Under the pieces are notes generated by a model. That model did not search any database and was not told where the DNA came from. It worked only from the letters and a program-made list of their open reading frames with translations. The position numbers and the translations under genes were made by a program. Positions 6,706 through 20,297 of a stretch of 20,297 bases of DNA are shown one piece after another. The stretch comes from Vitrella brassicaformis CCMP3155 (Eukaryota > Protista > Chromerida), in NCBI GenBank assembly GCA_001179505.1, contig CDMY01000783.1, forward strand, positions 1 through 20,297, read 5' to 3'. Position 1 is the stretch's first letter, and each line of letters opens with the position of its first letter.

Positions 6706-7452
6706 ACGAGAGACGCTCATTGTCTATATCGTGGCAGAGTCTTCACAGCGACTCGCGAATCTTTTGGCAAGAGCCATACAAACACTGTTGCGCGCCGTCC
6801 GATCCCGCCATCATCTGCGCGTCAATGACTTGGTGGTTCAGCGAGCTGCAACCCGAGAGGCAGCAGAGTCTTTGTGGCTTCCCCGTGTGATTCAAAAGGT
6901 GACTTCGCGACACAAACCAGACACAAGCCACCAGAAAGTCTTCGGAGTCCATACGCACAAGAAAGTCAACCAGTCATGTCTCGAGCCGCATCTCGGTCGC
7001 ATCGGGTTTCCTCCAATGAGCATCTTAACTGAGAGAAACGGCACTGAGGCATTTTCCTCGTCACAGAGGGATCCCTTCTCCCCTTTCAAAGACCCCAAAA
7101 AATCATGTTCGAAATCCTATCCCCAGCCATTTCTCGCCAACGGTCAAGGTTTCTCTTGCACCCGAGCTGTTCAGTTCAAAAAACTATGCCATGCTGCCGT
7201 CTACCATCCAGACGAGGATTTCATACGCGTTACACGAGCCCCAAAATTGGTCAGAAACGATGTCGTGTCTCTGACCCCAGCCAGTGGCCCCTGCGTGTGT
7301 CTCTGACACACAGTCGCAGACATAAGGCACGTCACCACACTCGTGATATCTTTCTGTCCCGAGCAATGCAGACCTCCAAAATCACATTGACAACACGACG
7401 CGCGTGCATGCGATCATGCCATCGTGAACTCACCGTAAAACCGCGCACCCTA
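6706..7452 (+). repeat. Repeat A copy 1 (~740-bp non-coding dispersed repeat)
   Basis: Colinear with 15151-15864 and 19401-20123. Shared strings include gggtttcctccaatgagcatcttaact, cgccaacggtcaaggtttctcttgca and ttacacgagccccaaaattggtcagaaa. All copies end in accgcgcacccta. Confidence 0.92.
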
Positions 7453-7646
7453 TCTCCTCAAATTATCCTGGCGCCGCAAAAGGAAGGGGAAGGTACACAC
7501 GCTCTGAGCTCCTGCGTGACGAGGATTCAACAATCAACCAATCAACAGGTGTGCGTGAGAAAAGAGGGGAAGATGTCATAGGTCGTGGTATGTTTGGATG
7601 TGGATGTTATGGTGTGTCGCAGGCGTGTGTGTGTCCCCTTTGTTCA

Positions 7647-8225
7647 ATGGTGTACGACATCAGTGGCCCTGGGCCGAGAGAGCGTGAAATCTGGTTGAAC
7701 GACCTGTCGGAGGAGGGGATTGAGGTGATTTGCTCCGAAGACTTCGGCATTGAGTACCTCTCAGTGTCGGCAGGCTGCCAGGAGAAGGTCAGTGGTCGGG
7801 AGGGTAAGGTTTGGGGCGCCAACAACTACCTCGTGGTCCCTATGGCATGCCGTGACTACATCTCCAACTCGCCCAAGTCGTACAACGTGTTGTTTGTCGT
7901 CGCGACGGTGACATCGGAGACCTACCTCAGCGCCAAGAACATGGGCGTTCTCCGACAAGACGCCGATCACTCCATCGTACCCGATGGCGTTCGCGGGACA
8001 CCATCGATGTATGTGGACATCGAAGGTGTGGCGGTGCACTGCTACCAATCACACGGCCACTTCGCTGATGCCAACGTGCTCGGGATGGGGGCCCTGCGGG
8101 ACCTCGGGTGGTCGCCGATGATCAACTGGGCAGACAACACATTCATGCTGACCTCTCTCACGGATCTGCCGCAACTGTGTGCCCATGGGACGATGCTTAA
8201 ACCAAGGTCAAGGCACGGGGGGTGA
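7647..8225 (+). CDS. Single-domain retropepsin-like (clan AA aspartic protease fold) protein with degenerate catalytic motif; intronless
   Basis: MVYDISG...YNVLFVVATVTSETYLSAKNMGVL...HFADANVLGMGAL. The spacing matches the (F)LVDTGSPxTxL ... NVLG(M)DxL pattern, but D-T-G reads A-T-V (codons from 7902). The ORF is open from 7551; ATG 7647 is preferred because the upstream part looks like GT-rich intron/UTR sequence. Confidence 0.6.
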   Translation: MVYDISGPGPREREIWLNDLSEEGIEVICSEDFGIEYLSVSAGCQEKVSGREGKVWGANNYLVVPMACRDYISNSPKSYNVLFVVATVTSETYLSAKNMGVLRQDADHSIVPDGVRGTPSMYVDIEGVAVHCYQSHGHFADANVLGMGALRDLGWSPMINWADNTFMLTSLTDLPQLCAHGTMLKPRSRHGG

Positions 8226-8953
8226 TGCAGCACCGCCATCGCCACCATCGCAGCCCCCAGACACCCAGCTCTGCCCGCGATGGGGGGAGAGGGCGGGTGC
8301 GCATTTGTCTGCTGCATTGGTGCGGGCTGCTGGCCTGTGTTTGAGGGGCGGGAGGCTGTCATGGCGTAGTATTGGGGCGATGGACGGCGCTGGAGTGTTG
8401 TCATCGGATGAGTGAGCGTGGCCTTTGTGCAGAGGCATATGTAGAAAAATTCATGCGGACGATGTGTGGACAAGTGAGTGCATGGATGCGATCTGTCAAT
8501 TATCTCTCTCGTTCAAACCTTGTTTGCGGGCAGCCGACGGGAAGGGTGGGTGTTTGTAGCCGGCTGCCGCTCATACACTCATCCTCAGTCACCCGCGTTT
8601 AAGGATCTCGACAGAAAGGGTGCTTATCTGGATTTGGTGATACGGTGTCACGTGTGACAGTGGAGATTCGGCATCGTATACATGACAATTTCCAGAAGTG
8701 ACAGCTTCGACGCCACACAGCTGCATTCGACAGACTCAGCAGGGAAAGCGATGCACGACTGCGTCTTGCATCTGTTCCAGAGAGTTTGTCCATGGGTCAC
8801 AGAGAAAATCTGTCTAAGCGTCCATATTTCCACGGCTCACAGAATCTACAATCAACGAAAAAGAGGGCATCGACCGGCTGGCACATGACTGGCAAGCAAC
8901 GGGAAGCCATCTATCTCAGGCGACCGTCAACGTTGACCGTCGCCGCCCTTCCC

Positions 8954-11147
8954 TCACTCATACTTCCGTTCCGTCAAGAAGCTGAATGGGCATGTCTCCG
9001 CCAGGGAAAATCCCACGAACACCCTCAGAGACGACTGAGAAGGATAGTACAGCGGCGTGCCCTTGATGTAATCCGTTTTGTCTTGTCTTGTCGAGCCGCC
9101 TGCTTTGCGGCAGCTGTAGGTGTTGCAAAGGATGTCGGTGCGTCGCCTTGCAGCCACACGGTGTGGATCTCCAGACCATCGAGAAGACCCTCGTTCCCGA
9201 GGGCCTCGAGAGCCCGCTCGATTGTCGGCTTCCTGTCTTCTGGCCCCTGGTCGGCTTCCTTGTTCTGGTAGCCCCAGATCTGGCGCAGCTCGCCGTCCTT
9301 GGTCACAAAGACGAAGGAGTCCCAGCCCTGGAATTGGGGGTTTCCAGGGTCAAGCAAGTAGGACACGTAGCCTTCGTTCATCTCCTTCCGCACTCCGTAA
9401 CGATTGAAGCACTCAATGAGCTGCGGCAGGTCCTTCGCGTCTTGAACAGGCACTCGCACGATCCCTCCGAATGGGCAGCCACGGGTACTGATCACCGGAG
9501 GCGGCAGAAGGTCTGCTGGCGTGCCGGTCAGCAACGATGTGGGCGACTGGGATCCATCCATTGCCATGGTGTGGCTGTCCAGCAGTCGTAGAAGTACGGC
9601 AGCCTTGGTCACCCCCTCCCACCGCTTCCCAGAGCCTCGCGGCAGCAGCACCTGTCGCAGATATTTGTCCACCATGCCGATGCAGTTGATGAAAGGGCCG
9701 CCGAACTTGGTCACCAGCTGCTCGTTCTCCGAAAGGGACATTGCTTCGCCCACAAATGTACAAGCCTTTCCCAAGTAGCAGGGAGGCCACACGCAACCCT
9801 CGCCGTAGACGTCCAGACTCGCCGTCATCGCGCCGAGCGACTCAAAAGTAGGCAGCGCTTGGATCTCCCTTGAGTGCCGTGCGGATGACAGCCGGGGCTG
9901 TGGACGTGTCAACGGATTTGCTGCTAGTGAAGTGCTCCAGCACATCGCCCTCATTCGATGAGGTCTCGCTCCGCCGGTAAAGCTCGAACAGCAGGGCAGG
10001 TGCCCGGCCAGTCCAACATATCTCTCCTTCGCTTGCAGAGGGGCTGATGGCCAGCGCCTCGGTCGGCTCCTCGATACGGGGGATCTCGAGCCTGTACACG
10101 TCACGTGCGCTTCTCCGGTCGACCCAATAATCCCTGATGCTCTTGCCCACTGTGGCGACGTGACTACTGAAGACGAAGTAACGATCTTCCGCTCCGAGGC
10201 AGCTAAGGATGAACTCAGCTACCGCCCTCGCCTCCGATCCTTCAACAGTCAGTGCCGGCAAGGCCTCCTTCGTGAGAAGCTGGTTTAACTTGTCAACAAG
10301 GAGAATCAGGGGCCCGGTGAGCCATCTCTCCAGGAGAAGCGGATCAAGAGAGACGTGATCTATCCAGTCTTCGAACGAGATGTCATCCGGATCCTTGCCG
10401 ATCTGCTTCGCCAGACTCGCGACTGTCTCCTCTCTTGCACACGCCCACGTAATCCGCAGCACTATCGAGTCCAGCAGAGTCAACTCGCTGCGCTTGTGGA
10501 GCTGGGCCTCATGCTCGTTGAAGCGAGTTTGGCCGCTGAAGGTTATGAAAAGCACCGGCTTGCCGCGTCGTTGCAGCTCGCTCCCGAGCTCCTTGAGGGC
10601 ACGCGACTTGCCGCCTCTCGCGAACCGCGTCAGCACCACAGGGCCCACCCGAAAGTCCGTCGTGTCATAGCTGGCGAACCGTGGCAAAATGTAGTCGTCC
10701 ACGACGTGTAGCAGTCTGGTGAGGCCGACGTACTGCTCAGGATCTGGACGCTCGAGTCCGCGAGCCCGCGGGGGCTCTGGCGTGAGCGCGGGGACGTGTC
10801 GGGACTCACGCTGAGCGTTGGGGTCTGTGAGCTTTGTCAATTGAGATGAGGTGGCTGTCCGTGATCAAGAAGTTGCGAGAGCGGCGGACTCCTCCAGGTC
10901 CGGTGTCTGAGGGCCAGCAGAAACAGGAGAAATGTGCGAGAGCCAGATCCTCATCCCGCCCTGTTTTACAGTCCCCACCTGCTTCACTCATGCGAAGGAT
11001 GGAGGGGGAGCTGACAGATTGGCCCTTCTTGGTTTTCAGTGGTGTACGTCTGGAGAGGGCCATACGGTGCAGGAACGCATTATGGCCAGGTAATGAAGCA
11101 GAGGCCACAGACAGAGTAAGGAGCAAGATCCACAGCATCACGGCCAT
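8954..11147 (-). pseudogene. Crinkler/RHS (CR)-type P-loop NTPase + PD-(D/E)xK-fold nuclease gene with two frameshifts; putative signal+transit leader exon upstream
   Basis: ORF 9842-10840 has Walker A-like RVGPVVLTRFARGGKSRAL and Walker B-like LILLVDKLN (K where E is expected). The protein continues in another frame (ORF 9025-10104: WPPCYL, GSGKRWEG, nuclease-like FQGWDSF...IWGYQNKE) and finishes in ORF 8954-9157 (LYYPSQSSLRVFVG). Frameshifts lie at about 9865 (apparent 2-nt loss) and about 9082-9091 (5-nt tandem duplication). Leader: ATG 11147 MAVMLWILLLTLSVASA; its splice link to the body is inferred. Confidence 0.72.
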
Positions 11148-11390
11148 CAGACGATTAAGCGAAGTGGCGGAACAACGAGTCAAGGGCGACCCTGAGCAAT
11201 ACCTGAGCAACAGAACAGCAAACAAAATAGGCGCCAGAGGTGAACAAGGATGTGTGAATGACCTCTCTCTTAATCGCTTGACATCTCAGCCACGGGCAAC
11301 ACTGTGTTGGCACAAATGTGCGCACAACACTGGTGGTGCCCTCTGGGGTACCCTGTGAAAGCTTTCTAGTGAGGTGGAACCCTTGTCAAC

Positions 11391-12112
11391 GCGTGTTTGT
11401 CCTGCCGTGCTCCTTCTTTCTTCTCTAAACAGCCTTCGGCCCGGAGATCTGGATGGCGATGGCGGTTGCAACGCGGCGGTTGCAACGGAGGCGCCCAAAA
11501 CGGCGGGAGGACGACAAGAGAAGCGCCACGACGGGCAACGGAGAGCCGGGACTCTTTGAGTGCTTCTCTACGGCGCCATGTTGCGGCCCGCATGTGTGGT
11601 GCTTCTGGTCCTCGCGGGGCTGGTTGTGGGTGGTGCAGACGTCCGCTCCCTTCAAGTGAAGCCCGCGCCGAGCCATCCCCACAAGGGCCAACATCCACCT
11701 CACCCAAAGAGCGGGCCGACTAACAGCAAGGGAAAAGGCAAGGAACAAGGAGGGAAGGGCAAAGGCAATGGCAGCGGCAAGGGGAAGTGGCAGACGAAGG
11801 ACCTCACATGCCAGGTAAGACGACCCTCACAGACAAGCGGCGTGTCGGTCGGGAAGTGGCTGATTGTGCGCGGTGTTTGCAGAGTGACGTTCTTCTAAGC
11901 GCGTCAGAACAGTCGTCCGAAAGCAGGGCCATCTCTGACATTGTCACCCGTAAGTCTGGCGTGCCGCTGCTCGTCACGACACATGAGGTGAACCAGTGCC
12001 CTCTCTGTGCCTGTCTGTGCATGTGTGTATGTCAGCGTCGGACAGTCAGCAAGTGCCCATCGGTGTCGAGGTTCAATCAGGCTTCGCCGAGCTTGGTGTC
12101 AACGACATTCGG
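11391..12112 (+). repeat. 5' duplicated block of paralogue X1 (upstream region plus first exons/introns)
   Basis: Aligns with about 15925-16643 at an offset of about 4529. By eye, 11541-11807 is identical to 16070-16336. Confidence 0.92.
11461..11486 (+). promoter_or_regulatory. Tandem GGCGGTTGCAAC x2 (contains palindrome GTTGCAAC) about 90 bp upstream of the X1 ATG
   Basis: Direct 12-mer repeat with period 14, exactly conserved at 15993-16018 upstream of X2 while neighbouring bases vary. Function is inferred. Confidence 0.4.
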
Positions 12113-14638
12113 ATCGTCGGTGTGAATGAAGGTTTTCTCTTCACGGAGCTTCGGCTTGACTGTGGATCGAACCCTACTCCACTCGGTGAAGTGATCGACG
12201 CTTCAGTCACTTTCCGGTTTGGCGTTCCTCTCGGCGATGGCTCCTATGATGCGACTGAGGATGCGATCTGCAACGTGCAAGTGCAATGTGGATCAATAGG
12301 TGAGGTGATGCAAGGCTTGCTTTGGCGGCACCCGTCCTGGTTATCTGTCCCTCTGCCTTCACCAGAGCCGCCAACTGAAGCGCCTGCGCCAACAGAGGCA
12401 CCGACACCCACGTGCAGGGTTAGAGCAAGAGGCGTTCCATCCCATGATATCGCGCTCCATGTGCTTGTTCAACCGCTAATTTGGACTCGTTTTGAACAGG
12501 ATGTGTCGTTGTCGACGAGGCAAGGAAACAAATTTTCTCGCGACATCGCACAATTTGTCGGATGTAAGAGCTATACAGCCTCCATTTTCCCCCCATGTGC
12601 CCATGCCTATATTTGCGCTTCGAACAGCGACGCCTGACAGGGTGGTGACTAGAGTCGATATCCCGGCAAAATTCGAATCTTTTGGTAGCAACGATATCAA
12701 GATAACGGCGCTGCAGGAGGACTCGCCGTCAAGACGATTCACGGCTGTGGAATTGGAGTGCGGCGACGATGCCAGTCCCCTGGACCGTAGTGAGACAATC
12801 GCGGTACCCGTACATGCCTCAAGACACAGAAGAAGTAAAATTGAAACGTGGCTGGGGCTATGTTGCACAGATCACGTTCGAATTTGCGAGGCCCACCGGC
12901 GATGGTGGTTACGTCGATCCAGTCAGCGCCACGTGCGATGTGCGAATCGACTGCATGTCGAGAGGTAGGTATGGAGGAAGCACGATAGAGGCCACTTGGC
13001 TTCTGACAGTGATAGTGTGGCTTGGGTGTTGTCACATTTTCAGACGAGCCGCCTCCAGCGCAGCCTCCCCCACCACCCCCTCCTCGTAAGCTGTCGAGAG
13101 CACAGAAGGCACCCAAAAGCTGATATGAATCTGTTTCGCTTCTCCTTCCTTCCGTGCGCCTGATTCCCTTCGTGCAGCTCCGCGGCCGCCTCCTCCACGT
13201 AGGATGGGCTAACACATGAGACACCAATACGAAACGAAGGAATGCTCTCCTCTCCCAGCGCCACCTCCTCCTGCTCCTCCTCGCCCGCATCCACCTCCCC
13301 CACCACGTGAGCAACCGAGTGATCAGCCAGCAAGCAAGACTGAGCTCATTTTGTGGTGCGTCTGTCGGTGCCATGTGTGTTCCTTACAGCCCCTCCCCCA
13401 CCCCCACCACCACCTCCTCCCCCGCCGCCTTCTCCTCAGCCGTCAGTCACATGTCGGGTGAGCGGTGGAGTGCCAATGGTGCACCGGCTTGGGTGCTGAT
13501 AGTGTGCATGTTATATTTCGTGCAGGATGGGCATATCTCTGCGCCACAGTCATCATTCAACTTCAAAGACATCGCTGAGTTCGCCAGTAGGCTAAGCCGG
13601 CAGCATTCGTAGATATGAACGTGAATTTCTGCATTTTGTGCACACTTGTCAGCGTCGTCGGATCGTTTGGTGATTGGTATAAACGTGCAGGCTCCGTTTG
13701 ATGAGCTACGCACCAACGACATACGGTAAGCCGGGGCCCACTGACCCACAAATCGCCAGGTGTAACATGTGATGTTGTCACCTGGCGATTCAGATTGTCT
13801 GGGAAGAAGAATGACCCTGACAAGCCGTTCAGGTTCACAGCACTTAAGCTGCAATGTGGCAAGTTCCCCAACCCACTAGACAGAGAAGTCGATGTGCCGG
13901 TAAGTGGAGCTAAGACATTTGTGCATTACGCCGTGTGCGTATCCTGTTTTATCGCGTGGCAGGTAAAGTTTAGCTTTGGCCGGAAGCCCAACGGTGGCGA
14001 ATACGTGGACACTGTGTCGGCCGAGTGCAACGTGCGGGTAACCTGCACTTCGGAACGTAAGGAGGGAAAGAAAGGTCCCGAGAGGGATGACTGTGATGAC
14101 TTTCTTGACATCTGATTGACCCTCTTTCGCTCGCTCCAGCCGATTACAGCCCCCCTGCCGTCATCTGCAACAAAGCGCAGGCAAGAATCACAACCCACTT
14201 GGACTCCAAGAAGCTCAAACAGATCACGTAAGGACAAATGCGCAGGCACACGAGGATTGCAGGAAGACGTCTGTCTGCCATGTGTGTTGTCGTCCATTAG
14301 GCGATTTGCGTTCGTCAAGGGCTATGGATTCTGGCGAGCGAGTGAGGTTGTCGTGCCATTCCCGTTTGACAAGACGAGGGGCAGCATCTACCACTTTGGT
14401 CGAAATATCAAATTGAAGCCAAAGCTCGACATCCAGGCACTCAAGCTCAAGTGCGGCAGATTCGCGACTCCAAGCAACAAGGTATGGACACGTATCCGTC
14501 TACTGATGTCAATGAGTCTTTCTTCGTATGTGCTGTGAGCAGACTGTCCGCCTGCCCGTCTTCTTCAAATTCCGCGACGACATAAGCGGCAACGAAGTCT
14601 TCCGAACATGCCCCGTATCTCTGAAGTGTACATTCTAG
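11578..14638 (+). CDS. Secreted proline-rich modular protein X1: signal peptide, H/P- and K/G-rich segment, four ~110-aa 4-Cys domains with polyproline linkers
   Basis: MLRPACVVLLVLAGLVVGGA is the signal peptide. Domains: D1 TCQ|SDV..LDCG..ICNVQVQCG; D2 TCR|DVS..LECG..TCDVRIDC; D3 TCR|DGH..LQCG..ECNVRVTC; D4 ICNK..LKCG..TCPVSLKCTF, ending at TAG 14636-14638. Canonical GT-AG sites join the exons in frame. Confidence 0.82.
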
Positions 14639-14739: not shown

Positions 14740-14948
14740 CTTTTGTGAGAGGCAGAGTGGTGGGCTGGGGTATGGATTGCACACAGAGGAGCCCTTTTGT
14801 CCAGTGAGATCGTGAGCTATTTGGTGCGTGTGATGCGCGAATTTTCCGGAGAGATGGGGAGGGGAGGTGCACACTTCTGGCCGCGCATGCGCCACTGCCA
14901 ATTTTCGCTCACATTGTCCTGACGGCTGCTGTCCCTGGACCGCGTATT
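14740..14948 (+). repeat. Repeat B copy 1 (3'-flank block of X1)
   Basis: 209 bp with only 4 mismatches to 18967-19175 by eye. Weaker similarity continues to about 15150/19400. Confidence 0.92.
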
Positions 14949-15150
14949 GGTGTCCGTTTTGTACTTGTATGCTTATCTCTGTACTCCCTAACCACGGTAT
15001 CCTCCGTGTGCTTGGCTGGTGGGCTGAGGGGGTCGCGCTCATCACATCATTTGCCGCCATGCTTGTCTATCGCACATCATTCACACGATAGAAGGCCCAC
15101 TTGTTTTCTTCACTTTGAGTGATTTTTCTGAACTGTGCTTGCGCCAAAAG

Positions 15151-15864
15151 ACGACAGACGCTCCTTTTTATCGTGGCAGAGCCTTCACAGCGAATCATGA
15201 AACAGTGTTGCGCGCCTAAGTTCCGCCATCATCTGCGGCGTCAATGACTTCAAGTTGGTGGTGGTTCAGCAACTTTTTGGCTCCCCCGTGTGATTCAAGA
15301 GGTGACTTCGCGACACAAACCAGACACAAGCCACCAGAAAATCTTCCATATGCCAAGAAAGCCCACCCAGTCATGTCTCAAGCCGCATCTCAGCCGCCCC
15401 GGGTTTCCTCCAATGAGCATCTTAACTGAGAGGAACGGCACTGAAGCATTTTACTTGTCACAGAGGGATCCCTCTGCCCCTTTCAAAGACCCCCAAAAAT
15501 CATTTTCGGAAATCCTCTCTCCGGCCGTTTCTCGCCAACGGTCAAGGTTTCTCTTGCATCCGAGCTGTTCAGTTCAAATAAACCATGCCATGCTGTCGTC
15601 TATCATCCAAAGGTGGATTTCATGCCCCTTACACGAGCCCCAAAATTGGTCAGAAAATGAGGTGGTGTCTCTGACCCCAGCCAGTGGCCCCTGCTTGTGT
15701 CTCTGACACACAGTCGCAGACATAAGGCACGTCACCAGACTCGTGATATCTTTCTCTCCTGAGCCAATCAGATCTCCAAAATCACACAATAGCCTGCTGC
15801 CACGAAAAGATGCCCATGCATGCGCTCATGCCATCGTGAACTCACCGTAAAACCGCGCACCCTA
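15151..15864 (+). repeat. Repeat A copy 2
   Basis: Colinear with copies 1 and 3, with small indels near its 5' end. Ends accgcgcaccctaa. Confidence 0.92.
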
Positions 15865-15924
15865 ATCACCTGATGACACGTGCTTCTTGATGGGATAGAT
15901 CTCACAGAGCGAGATCTCTCTCTT

Positions 15925-16643
15925 GTGTGTGCCCTGCCCTGCTCATTCTTTCTTTGCTAAACAGCCTTCGGCACTGGGATCTGGATGGCGGCGGCGGTTG
16001 CAACGCGGCGGTTGCAACGGAGGCGCCCAAAACGGCGGGAAGACGACAAGAAGCGCCAGACGGGCACAAGAGAGCCGGGACTCTTTGAGTGCTTCTCTAC
16101 GGCGCCATGTTGCGGCCCGCATGTGTGGTGCTTCTGGTCCTCGCGGGGCTGGTTGTGGGTGGTGCAGACGTCCGCTCCCTTCAAGTGAAGCCCGCGCCGA
16201 GCCATCCCCACAAGGGCCAACATCCACCTCACCCAAAGAGCGGGCCGACTAACAGCAAGGGAAAAGGCAAGGAACAAGGAGGGAAGGGCAAAGGCAATGG
16301 CAGCGGCAAGGGGAAGTGGCAGACGAAGGACCTCACGTGCCAGGTAAGACGATCCTCACAGACAAGAGGCGTGTCGGTCGGGAAGTGGCTGACTGTGTGC
16401 GATGTTTGCAGAGTGACGTTCTTCTAAGCGCATCAGAACAGTCGTCCGAAAGCAGGGCCATCTCTGACATCGTCACATGTAAGTCTGGCGTGCCACTGCT
16501 CGTCACGACACATGGGGTGAACCAGTGCCCTCTCTGTGCCTGTCTGTGCATTTGTGAATATGTCAGCGTCGGACAGGCAGCAAGTGCCCATCGGTGTCGA
16601 GGTTCAATCAGGCTTCGCCGAGCTGGGTGTCAACGACATTCGG
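15925..16643 (+). repeat. 5' duplicated block of paralogue X2
   Basis: Near-identical partner of 11391-12112. Confidence 0.92.
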
Positions 16644-18861
16644 CTCGTTGCCCTGAATGAGGACCCGGCATCCCCAACACGCTTCACGGCGCTTCGGCTT
16701 GACTGCGGCGCCAACCCTTTCCCACTTGGCGAACCCACCGATGTGTCAGTGGACTTTGAGTTCTGCTCTCCCCTCTGCAATGAGCCGGGCTATGACGCTG
16801 AGACTGTCACGTGCAGCCTACAAGTTCAGTGTGGCTCGTCAACTACTCCAAGTAGGGAATGCCCGACGGTCTGCATCTTCGTATTGCAGCGCTTTGTCCC
16901 TTCCAGTGGTGTCGACCTTACCGCCTTCAGAGCCGATCGTGACTCCCCCTCCACCACCACCGGCTCCTGTCCAGCCCCCTACCTGTCGGGTACCTATGCC
17001 GTGCACCGCACTTATCATTCCGCACGAATGTGAGTTGTTTCTCTCTCTCTCGTTCCGTTTTCTCTTTTTTTTGCAGAACTTCTTCCTCTCTACGACCCAG
17101 GGATCATCGGCCAGCAAGGGCCTCGCCTCCTTTGGTAAGGGAGAGACAGCGATGTTCCTTTTACAGACCCGATTGGAGTATGGATGGCTGTTGTGACTCA
17201 GTGACGTCTGAGGGATTGGCCATTGGAGTCAATGTGCCACAACCATTCAAGCAACTCGGCCCCAATGGCATCCGGCTGGTTGGTTTGCGAAATGACGCTG
17301 AAATGGATCAGAAGTTTACCGACGTCCAGCTGACCTGCGGCCCGTCTCCGCGCCAGCTGGGCCAGACTCTGACTGTCCCAGGTAAGCAGCAGGGCACGAG
17401 AATCCACCTGAGAGTACTTCATCATGTGCTCTGGCTGACAGTGACCTTTGATTTCGGAAAGAGAGCAAACGGGGGCTATGAGGAGACTGTCAGCGCGACC
17501 TGCGGCGTCAGAATCAGATGCAATGCGAGAGGGCCGCCTCCGCCACCACCCCCACCACCGCCGCCACCTGTCCCCCCACCGCCCCCACCCCCTCCCCCTC
17601 CCCCACCCCCTACTTGTCGGGTAATATACCCACCGCACTTATCCTCTGCACTGATGTGGGTTGTTTCTCTCTTTCTTTCTCACTCTCTTTCTGCGTTGCA
17701 GAATTTCTTCCTTTCCACGACGCAGGGCTCCACCGTCAAAAAGGGGATTGACTCGTTCGCTACATGTAATTAGTTTTTCTGTTTCACGGTTTCCATATAG
17801 GATGTGCCTTCCTGTTGATTTACTTCAGCAACGTCTGACCGAGTTGTCATCGGCGTCAATGTACCATTCCCTTGGACATTCATGGGTCCCAACGACATTC
17901 GCCTGCTGGGTTTGCGAAACGACCCCGCCATGGAGAACCGATTCACCGCCATCCAGCTGAAGTGCGGGGCCTCTCCGCGCCCTCTCGGGCAGACTCGAAC
18001 CGTCCCAGGTCGGTTGACAGCAAGAGAATGGACAGGAGCAGACACATGCTTTTATTGACTGATTTCGAACGCAGTCGAATTCGAGTTTGGCAAGAAGGCT
18101 AATGGTGGGTATACAGATACCGTCCGTGGCACATGCGATGTCCGAATCAGATGCAACCAGAAGAGTGAGAAGACAAGCAACTGAAGCGTCTATCCATGTG
18201 ATGTGATATTTCTTGTCCTTATCAGGCCCTCCGCCTCCCCCTCCCCCTCGCCCACCTCCCCCACCACGTGAGCCACCGAGTCATTAGCCTACAAGAGTGA
18301 GCTCATTTCATGGTGCGTCTGTCGGCGCCTTGTGTGTTTCATGCAGCCCCTCCCCCACCCCCTCCGCCGCCGCCAGGCCCACAGCCCAAGATAGTGTGCA
18401 GGAGGAGGAGAATCTTCACCACAAGAGGGACAAAGACGCTCAAAGCCGTCACGTAAGGGCACCATGCAGGATGACGTCGGCGCAGGCAAATGACTCCCCT
18501 CTTCCATACGTTCTTGACAGGACCTTCGCCGCCGTCCGTAATGCTGGTGTTGGTTGGCGTGCGGTTGGTGCCAGGGTGCCGGTGGCATTCAGGACGCTGG
18601 CCGGCGGCCGGAACCAGTTCGCCAGGGACATCAAGCTCCAGTTCAAGAAGAACAGGCAGCAAATCAAGCTCAAGTGCGGCAGATTTCCCAAGCCACTGGG
18701 CAAGGTGAGATGAAAACGGCTGATGTTTGGAGCAGTGCACCCGCATTCAGCTGCTGGTTGTTTTCATTCTGCAGCAACTCACGGTCCCGGTCTTCTTCCG
18801 GTTCAGACGGGGGAATCATGAGCTCTGCAAGACCTGCGACGTTTTCGTCACTTGTCAATAG
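16107..18861 (+). CDS. Secreted proline-rich modular protein X2 (paralogue of X1), four 4-Cys domains with polyproline linkers
   Basis: Same signal peptide and exon 1 as X1. Domains: D1 ..LDCG..TCSLQVQCG; D2 TCR|NFFLSTTQG..LTCG..TCGVRIRC; D3 TCR|NFFLSTTQG..LKCG..TCDVRIRC; D4 IVCRRRR..LKCG..TCDVFVTCQ, ending at TAG 18859-18861. A near-pure poly-Pro linker lies at about 17534-17612. Confidence 0.82.
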
Positions 18862-18966: not shown

Positions 18967-19175
18967 CTTTTGTGAGAGGCAGAGTGGTGGGCTGGGGTAT
19001 GGATTGCACACAGAGAAGCCCTTTTGTCCAGTGAGATCGTGAGCTATTTGGTGCGTGTGATGCGCGAATTTTCCGGAGAGATGGGGAGGGGAGGTGCACA
19101 CCTCTGGCCGCGCATGCGCCACTGCCAATTTTCGCTCACGTTGTCCTGACGGCTGCTGTCCCTAGACCGCGTATT
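18967..19175 (+). repeat. Repeat B copy 2 (3'-flank block of X2)
   Basis: About 98% identical to 14740-14948. Confidence 0.92.
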
Positions 19176-19400
19176 TGTGTCTGTTTGTACTTCTGTGCTC
19201 CACATCCAGTCGGTATCTGTGTACTACTTCGTAAGCGCCGTGTCCTTCATGTGTTTGGCTGGTTGGCTGAGGGGATCGCTTGCATGCTCATCACATCATT
19301 TGCCGTCATGCTTGTCTATCGCACACCATTCAAACGATAGAAGACCCATTTGTTTTTCTTTCGTTTGGGTGGTTTTTCTGAACTGTGCTTGCGCTTAAAG

Positions 19401-20123
19401 ACGAAAAATGGTCATTGTCATGACGGAGCCTTCACAGCGACTCACGAATCTTTTGGCAAGAGCCATGCAAAGAGTGTTGCGCGCCCTCCGATCCCTCCAT
19501 CATCTGCGCGTCAATGACTTGGTGGTTCAGCGAGCTGCAGCCCGAGAGGCAGTAGAGTCTTTGTGGGCTTCCCTGTGTGGCAGTCATTTCGCGACAAAAC
19601 AAAACTTAAGCCACGACAAAGTCTTCGGAGTCCATACGCACAAGAAAGTTCACCCAGTCAAAGTCTCGAGCCGCATCTCGGCCCCGGTCGGGTTTCCTCC
19701 AATGAGCATCTTAACTAAGAGAAACGGCACTGAGGCATTTTCCTCGTCACAGAGGGATCCCTCCTGCCCTTTCAAAGACCCCAAAAAATCATTTTCGAAA
19801 TCCTATCTCCAGCCGTTTCTTCGCCAACGGTCAAGGTTTCTCTTGCACCCGAGCTGTTCAGTCCAAACCAGGGCACGCTATCGCCTACCATCCAGAGGAG
19901 GATTTCATACGCGTTACACGAGCCCCAAAATTGGTCAGAAAATGAGGTCGTGTCTCTGACCCCAGCCAGTGGCCTCTGCAGCTTGTGTCTCTGACACACA
20001 TCTCAGACATCAGGCACGTCACCAGACTCGTGATATCCTTCTCTCCCGAGCCATTCAGACCTCCTCCCGCGCCAGACGCCCATGCATGCTCCCAGGGAAC
20101 TCTCCGTAGAACCGCGCACCCTA
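19401..20123 (+). repeat. Repeat A copy 3
   Basis: Colinear with copies 1 and 2. Ends accgcgcaccctaa. Confidence 0.92.
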
Positions 20124-20297
20124 ACCCCCGCAGCAATTTGATCTGGACTGGGACGAAAACCGTTTTCATCATTCTTGTGCGAAAAAGGCCGGTGAGGACC
20201 TTTCCTGTAGTTAGCTGAATAGAGGATCTGCTGGGCGGTAAGTCCCAGAGTAAGAGTGCTTTTACTTTAATAAGACCGATGGACTGGCCAGTCAGTC

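Follow-up and report, generated by a model that had tools for sequence, protein, structure and literature searches.

A probable one-off composite insertion with a retropepsin-fold gene and a decayed ATPase-nuclease gene in a tandem array of Vitrella brassicaformis

Proteins that join a P-loop nucleoside triphosphatase (NTPase) to a nuclease of the restriction endonuclease (REase) fold make up about a quarter of the C-termini of Crinkler/RHS (CR) proteins, according to the summary of Zhang et al. 2016 given in PMC5289972, and the Crinkler genes of Phytophthora infestans are located in Helitron-rich regions (PMC5289972). Here we describe a locus of the chromerid alga Vitrella brassicaformis CCMP3155, in which a gene of this general design faces a gene with a predicted retropepsin fold. 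The window that we analyzed is the entire contig C783 (CDMY01000783.1, 20,297 bp), and it carries a tandem array built of a repeat A, a gene X and a repeat B. In the first unit of the array, a block of ~3.9 kb stands between repeat A and gene X1 and holds the two genes in convergent orientation. The original prediction, made from the sequence of this stretch, interpreted the block as a mobile unit pairing an NTPase-nuclease with a protease. Based on comparisons across the genome assembly, we give a probability of roughly 0.7 to a different reading, namely a one-off composite insertion, confined to this locus, into the spacer between A and X1, made by break repair or segmental duplication.

The minus-strand gene of the block resembles the CR modules in the order of its predicted parts, where an N-terminal P-loop ATPase (GGKT/S and Walker B motifs) is followed by a C-terminal E...D...QxK series in PD-(D/E)xK order. 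As in the Crinklers of oomycetes, the family is expanded, with at least 30 loci in one genome. Unlike Crinklers, no header (the ubiquitin-like translocation domain) was detected by Pfam, and a hydrophobic leader occupies the N-terminus instead. A further difference lies in the host, Vitrella being a free-living or coral-associated alga and not a pathogen. The window copy also departs from CR modules in that it is best read as a pseudogene, and the Walker B Glu is replaced by Lys both in the window copy and in its nearest paralogue. The plus-strand gene is analogous to the clan AA retropepsins (APRc, DDI1 and the retroviral proteases) in its predicted fold and in the pattern of a hydrophobic strand, x-T-G and, further on, N-x-L-G. 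It differs from them in that the catalytic Asp is Ala in the window and D, N, S, V, Q or H across the family, in that no Pfam model matches at threshold, and in that the family consists of small standalone proteins.

To define the array, we compared repeats within the window, where the matches were far above chance (E down to 1e-300). Repeat A lies at 6719-7452, 15273-15864 and 19408-20064 and beyond, the first copy, on the plus strand, forming the left flank of the block from 6706 to 7452. In junction alignments, all three copies finish on the same terminal bases, at 7452, 15864 and 20123. The X 5' block at 11393-12129 corresponds to 15925-16660, the two being 98% identical over 300 bp, while repeat B at 14740-15171 corresponds to 18967-19421, and B and A together form a single continuous repeat of ~1.1 kb. 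In unit 2, A and the X block are separated by ~58 bp, whereas in unit 1 the gap is ~3.9 kb, with the X block starting from ~11379-11393 (right junction and X1 5' homology block, plus strand, 11379-12129). The junction alignments thereby confirmed the difference in spacing on which the original prediction was founded. When the spacer-like bases at both edges are excluded, the block proper runs roughly from 7465 to 11378. Lists of bacterial-type open reading frames (ORFs) served as a guide only, considering that the source is a eukaryotic alga.

As an 'empty site' reference we used the intact A-X spacer of unit 2 (15865-15924). Elsewhere in the assembly (72.7 Mb, 1064 contigs), repeat A was found on C372 (L046:6839-7557), C809 (L047:4714-5547) and C919 (L048:5829-6421), and a 125-bp fragment of its end was found on C514 (L045:5587-5881). 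On C919, A, the spacer and the X 5' block align as one continuous stretch. On C514 the X 5' sequence appears within ~20 bp after the end of A, and the A copy of C372 leads into the same short spacer. Identity among A1, A2 and A3 is 89-90%, compared with 82-87% between these array copies and the dispersed ones. Because the A-spacer-X arrangement recurs on other contigs and the A copies of the array are mutually closest, these alignments indicate that the arrangement predates the array, that A1 is a true array member and that the block is a derived insertion. The proposal that the block interrupts an older arrangement is upheld by the same two observations.

Resemblance to the spacer is left at both edges of the block, over ~12 nt after 7452 and ~14 nt before 11393, although both matches are short and weak. 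At the left junction, 7453-7465 is probably what is left of the first bases of the A-X spacer, with ~10 of 12 positions the same as in the sequence directly after A on C514. The junction alignments further show that the middle ~35-40 bp of the spacer was lost at the unit 1 insertion. We considered whether the block could instead be ancestral here, either with loss from the other units or with a separate arrival of A1 upstream of it. Such a history could be argued from the uninterrupted junction being present in just one other unit (unit 2), from the dispersal of repeat A, whose 3' end is sharp at seven places, from the position of the piece 8162-8289 near another A copy on C809, and from the retropepsin-fold gene being old and without a close paralogue. 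We nonetheless regard it as unlikely. The A-spacer-X sequence on C919, part of it on C514, and the A-spacer sequence on C372 are all more diverged than the array copies; spacer-like remnants flank both edges of the block; the age of the ATPase-nuclease copy is close to that of the young array (synonymous divergence, dS, of 0.16 against ~10% divergence among A copies); and the grouping of A1 with A2 and A3 also speaks against an independent arrival of A.

If the block were a mobile element, further copies with the same boundaries could be expected in the genome. However, no second full or boundary-sharing copy of 7453-11390 was found in the 72.7 Mb assembly. The sole matches to the block were gene-sized (three ATPase-nuclease paralogues), a repeat of ~210 bp and one piece of 128 bp; by position, 7453-8160 is unique, 8162-8289, 8297-8508 and 8833-10909 have matches, and the remainder is unique. 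In six-frame protein searches, the plus-strand gene family was located on 13 contigs (at least 12 loci, with all 28 candidates scored) and the minus-strand family on ~33 contigs (at least 30 loci), and the two contig lists overlap at C783 only. The two genes are unlinked at all other loci, which is the outcome that the original prediction had itself named beforehand as refuting. Among the five block ORFs tested with Pfam, none contained a transposase, reverse transcriptase or integrase domain. A terminal-repeat search and the junction alignments revealed no terminal inverted repeats, direct repeats or target-site duplication at the ends of the block, in agreement with what had been reported at the outset, and a by-eye inspection, which is a weak test, found no convincing Helitron-like hairpin and CTRR end at the ends of the block or of repeat A.

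The cargo of the block is also of mixed age, where the ATPase-nuclease copy is 89% identical to its nearest paralogue and the retropepsin-fold gene has no relative at the DNA level. Neither of the two seems capable of powering movement, considering that the protease-fold gene is without its catalytic Asp and the ATPase-nuclease gene has frame breaks. A new element carrying an ATPase-nuclease and a retropepsin-like protease, inserted into the array, is highly improbable in view of the missing second copy or shared boundary, the unlinked gene families, the missing terminal repeats and target duplication, the great difference in age between the nearest relatives of the two genes, and the state of both genes. 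In its favor, the block is a derived insertion, earlier work connects ATPase and REase modules with transposons (Zhang et al. 2016, as summarized in PMC5289972), and the list of fold matches to the ATPase includes transposition ATPases, TnsC among them. Judged from the sequence, the block does not move as a unit, and the pairing of both genes in one mobile unit is contradicted by the small target deletion as well as by the single copy and the separate distribution of the two families. A new class of mobile element would have been of considerable importance; the evidence says that the block is not one and that the event was an ordinary one.

'Filler' insertions made by end joining, as well as small segmental duplications, occur at repaired double-strand breaks. 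The block shares with break-repair insertions its single copy, the lack of terminal repeats and of a target duplication, the small target deletion, and a patchwork drawn from unrelated sources. Its size, 3.9 kb with two complete gene bodies, exceeds what is usual for filler DNA. The block can also be compared with gene-capturing transposons such as Helitrons and Pack-MULEs, in that a non-autonomous stretch carries copies of host genes to a new site. In contrast with those elements, no termini, recognizable hairpin-plus-CTRR end, terminal inverted repeats, target duplication or other copies were found for it. Because the patchwork is unique, the junctions are without repeats, the target deletion is small and the cargo differs in age, break-repair capture or a small segmental duplication seems the best explanation.

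Based on this explanation, the block would have been captured while a DNA break was being repaired through end joining, or placed by a copy-and-paste segmental duplication, in one event or in several steps; the anatomy is observed directly, whereas the mechanism and the number of events are deduced from it. The insertion would have brought in a long-diverged retropepsin-fold gene from a cellular family, an ATPase-nuclease gene copy of similar age to the array (dS of 0.163, comparable with the ~10% divergence among A copies) together with its intron and leader, and unique filler, and the small dispersed repeat would have arrived later. The insertion lies ~180 bp upstream of the start codon of X1 (11560), so that X1 now stands head-to-head with the broken ATPase-nuclease gene, and the retropepsin-fold gene stands directly behind repeat A. 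As such, X1 was likely cut off from its usual upstream A, and the retropepsin-fold gene now follows A with its first exon starting in it. The locus would then be a documented example of how a one-off insertion remodelled a tandem gene array in a chromerid alga and separated an array gene from its upstream repeat.

Several observations weigh against this explanation. The assembly contains no locus with both genes that could have served as the donor, and an origin in one step cannot be demonstrated. At the junctions, the spacer remnants span just ~12-14 nt with weak similarity, and the empty-site reference consists of copies within the genome of one strain. The assembly is fragmented, with 1064 contigs and breaks at repeats, and copies of the block could be missing from it. 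In addition, the 128-bp piece of the block that lies near an A copy on C809 is unexplained by an insertion, and the presence of ATPase-nuclease family members on two of the four other A-bearing contigs (C514 and C372) hints at a non-random co-location.

This co-location is compatible with another scenario, in which ATPase-nuclease genes spread by break-and-capture and the retropepsin-fold gene was a passenger. Here, the nuclease itself or fragile neighborhoods would cause breaks, and gene-sized copies would end up, with untidy junctions, in unrelated loci, sometimes together with their neighbors. We consider this scenario very improbable. Apart from the origin of the block, the ATPase-nuclease genes on C514 and C372 lie 6-14 kb from repeat A, and their co-location with A suggests that both belong to a shared variable compartment of the genome.

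The main exon of the minus-strand gene, with short flanks, occupies 8833-10909, and its paralogues on C514 (89%) and on C757 and C866 (75-78%) were compared with it. The paralogue on C514 has an uninterrupted frame of 695 amino acids, and the window copy is 89.5% identical to this frame over 2.08 kb. Nevertheless, the window copy contains frame-breaking indels at ~10835, 9847 and 9092 and an early stop at 8956, which comprise two single-base changes in short homopolymer runs, a 5-bp tandem duplication and a stop-creating substitution. Between the two copies we counted 52 synonymous and 107 non-synonymous codon differences (dS 0.163; non-synonymous divergence, dN, 0.097; dN/dS 0.59). The window copy is best read as a pseudogene under relaxed constraint, unless the assembly is wrong at the breaks.

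We considered such an error together with the possibility that the contig is a chimera joined at repeats. Both edges of the block fall on edges of repeats, the 5' blocks of X1 and X2 are nearly identical over 300 bp, many contigs, C783 included, end in a high-copy element, and two of the three frame breaks are single-base changes in homopolymer runs, as sequencing errors would be. On the other hand, A1 differs by ~10% from A2 and A3, a divergence at which an assembler would not mix them up, the junction between A and the block is covered by database gene model P0005, and a 5-bp tandem duplication and a stop-creating substitution are atypical of read errors. An assembly artefact is thus very unlikely.

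Homology at the DNA level between the window copy and its close paralogues ends at a single base, 10909, which is the splice acceptor common to all four copies (CAG in the window and C514). Upstream of this acceptor, an intron and a leader with a hydrophobic, signal peptide-like stretch occupy 10910-11225 on the minus strand, as delineated from ORFs and the indel map, and the leader resembles those of C514 and C866 only at the protein level. No poly(A) trace was found at the 3' end of the window copy. Considering that the splice acceptor and the upstream leader are retained, the copy appears to have been duplicated at the DNA level together with its intron. We rejected retroposition, since the acceptor and leader are kept, poly(A) is missing, and intron-poor frames are normal in this family. 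Long intron-poor frames being usual in the family, intron poverty is a family trait and not a sign of recent movement. The original prediction had described two convergent genes with coding bodies that appear intron-free; the convergent orientation stands, and the lack of introns holds only in part, considering the 74-bp intron of P0005 and the minus-strand leader beyond the acceptor at ~10909, and the 2-kb main exon is frame-broken. Within the family, the paralogues of C757 and C866 contain an insert of ~76 bp (relative to window 10028-10035) that is spliced out in database model P0001 and is absent from the window and C514 copies, which by these alignments is a case of intron gain or loss.

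To characterize the encoded protein, we aligned seven family members, in which Walker A (GGKT) and Walker B (four hydrophobic residues and D-E) were seen, together with an invariant series of Glu, Asp and Gln-x-Lys in the C-terminal part that is PD-(D/E)xK-like. In the window and C514 copies, the acidic pair of Walker B is Asp-Lys (window region 10200-10260; residues 240-246 of C514), and even the intact C514 protein may not hydrolyze ATP. In the model of the C514 protein (predicted local distance difference test, pLDDT, of 62), the N-terminal domain matched AAA+/ORC/Cdc6/STAND ATPases with Z of 8-9, and the fold matches included transposition ATPases such as TnsC. Searches with the whole protein fold returned ATPase matches only, and the atlas gave unnamed clusters. 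Pfam gave no match of any kind in the window ORFs or the intact paralogue, NCBIfam and PADLOC gave nothing at threshold, relatives included, and PDB sequence and profile searches gave nothing significant, whereas weak ATPase_2 and AAA_22 matches were present in relatives. The model and the motifs together point to an AAA+/ORC-like ATPase with a nuclease-type motif. Of the initial assignment as a CR NTPase-nuclease, the P-loop ATPase and the PD-(D/E)xK-like motif are retained, and the window copy is frame-broken. The comparison adds further evidence that the large Crinkler-like ATPase-nuclease family of Vitrella turns over by duplication at the DNA level and by decay.

The plus-strand gene, represented by database model P0005 (247 amino acids, 7408-8225), consists of exon 1 at 7408-7548, a GT..AG intron of 74 bp at 7549-7622 and exon 2 of 603 bp at 7623-8225, and its ATG at 7408 falls in the final 45 bp of repeat A. 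Neither sequence nor profile searches of Pfam, NCBIfam, PADLOC and PDB returned a significant match for the protein. Its structure was predicted with an AlphaFold model built from 14 Vitrella paralogue segments (pLDDT 80.5), and every structural match of this model was an aspartic protease. The top structural match was Rickettsia APRc (Foldseek E of 3.6e-4 with probability 1.0; Z of 8.8 and a root-mean-square deviation of 3.2 Å over 104 residues), followed by DDI1 protease domains with Z of 7.0-7.5 and retroviral proteases with Z of 6-7, while pepsin lobes scored lower. The first 13 rows of VIA-align consisted of retropepsin-like proteases, as did each of the five Foldseek matches with E ≤ 0.001. 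The predicted fold is thus that of a retropepsin, and the fold part of the original assignment is borne out.

The position of the catalytic Asp, however, is Ala in the window copy, where the motif ATVT places Ala-Thr-Val in the position of the triad. Among Vitrella paralogues the same position is D, S, Q, H, N or V, and triads such as DTT, QTG, HTG and VTG occur; DTG is retained by only some family members, and the Asp is kept in 4 of 11 aligned members. Judging from these substitutions, members of this family are probably often non-catalytic. The RVP, gag-asp_proteas and Asp_protease_2 models did not match the window protein, and distant relatives gave only sub-threshold gag-asp_proteas matches, of 16-17 bits against a cut-off of 28. 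The nearest paralogues are 45-65% identical in protein. A profile search among 1.84 billion representatives yielded 785 relatives at E ≤ 0.001, mostly of 150-250 amino acids; named relatives were from Caenorhabditis, Auanema and a chytrid fungus, and the nearest atlas clusters were from Nematoda and Mucoromycota. In ten family members scanned, no reverse transcriptase or integrase domain was found. The family is a cellular one with a retropepsin fold and without a Pfam model, and is not a retroelement marker; although the fold is real in the prediction, its use as the mark of a mobile element fails on these small standalone cellular proteins. It represents a widespread family of small eukaryotic retropepsin-fold proteins in which the catalytic aspartate is often missing. 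On C242, two retropepsin-fold domains stand in tandem within one reading frame, in a pepsin-like manner.

At the end of the plus-strand gene, a 128-bp segment at 8162-8289 covers the final 21 codons of the retropepsin-fold gene and its 3' flank, and has one other copy, on C809, at 92% identity. That copy (window 8156-8289 compared with L047:5846-5985) lies ~340 bp downstream of repeat A without the gene body. The next stretch of the window, at 8297-8508 and between the two convergent genes, is a sharp-ended repeat of ~210 bp that is dispersed in at least 40 copies at 83-90% identity. No Rfam match was found for this repeat, which may be short interspersed element (SINE)-like or miniature inverted-repeat transposable element (MITE)-like; an Rfam scan of the block as a whole gave a chance-level match only. 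Repeat A itself is dispersed in few copies, which start at different 5' positions and share one sharp 3' end, seen at seven places.

The same junction region has been hit again in unit 3, where an element of ~320 bp starts 52 bp after A3, near the position of the block in unit 1, and the contig ends inside it (20176-20297, plus strand). This element has at least 139 candidate copies that are 97-100% identical and often located at contig ends (also L053:329-649 and L056:341-662). It looks young and is probably still active, and the assembly breaks at its copies. Towards the left of the window, a gene region at 2097-2187 shares a 91-bp piece with C919 (L048:8892-8982) at 85% identity, and C919 may be a wider paralogue of the window locus.

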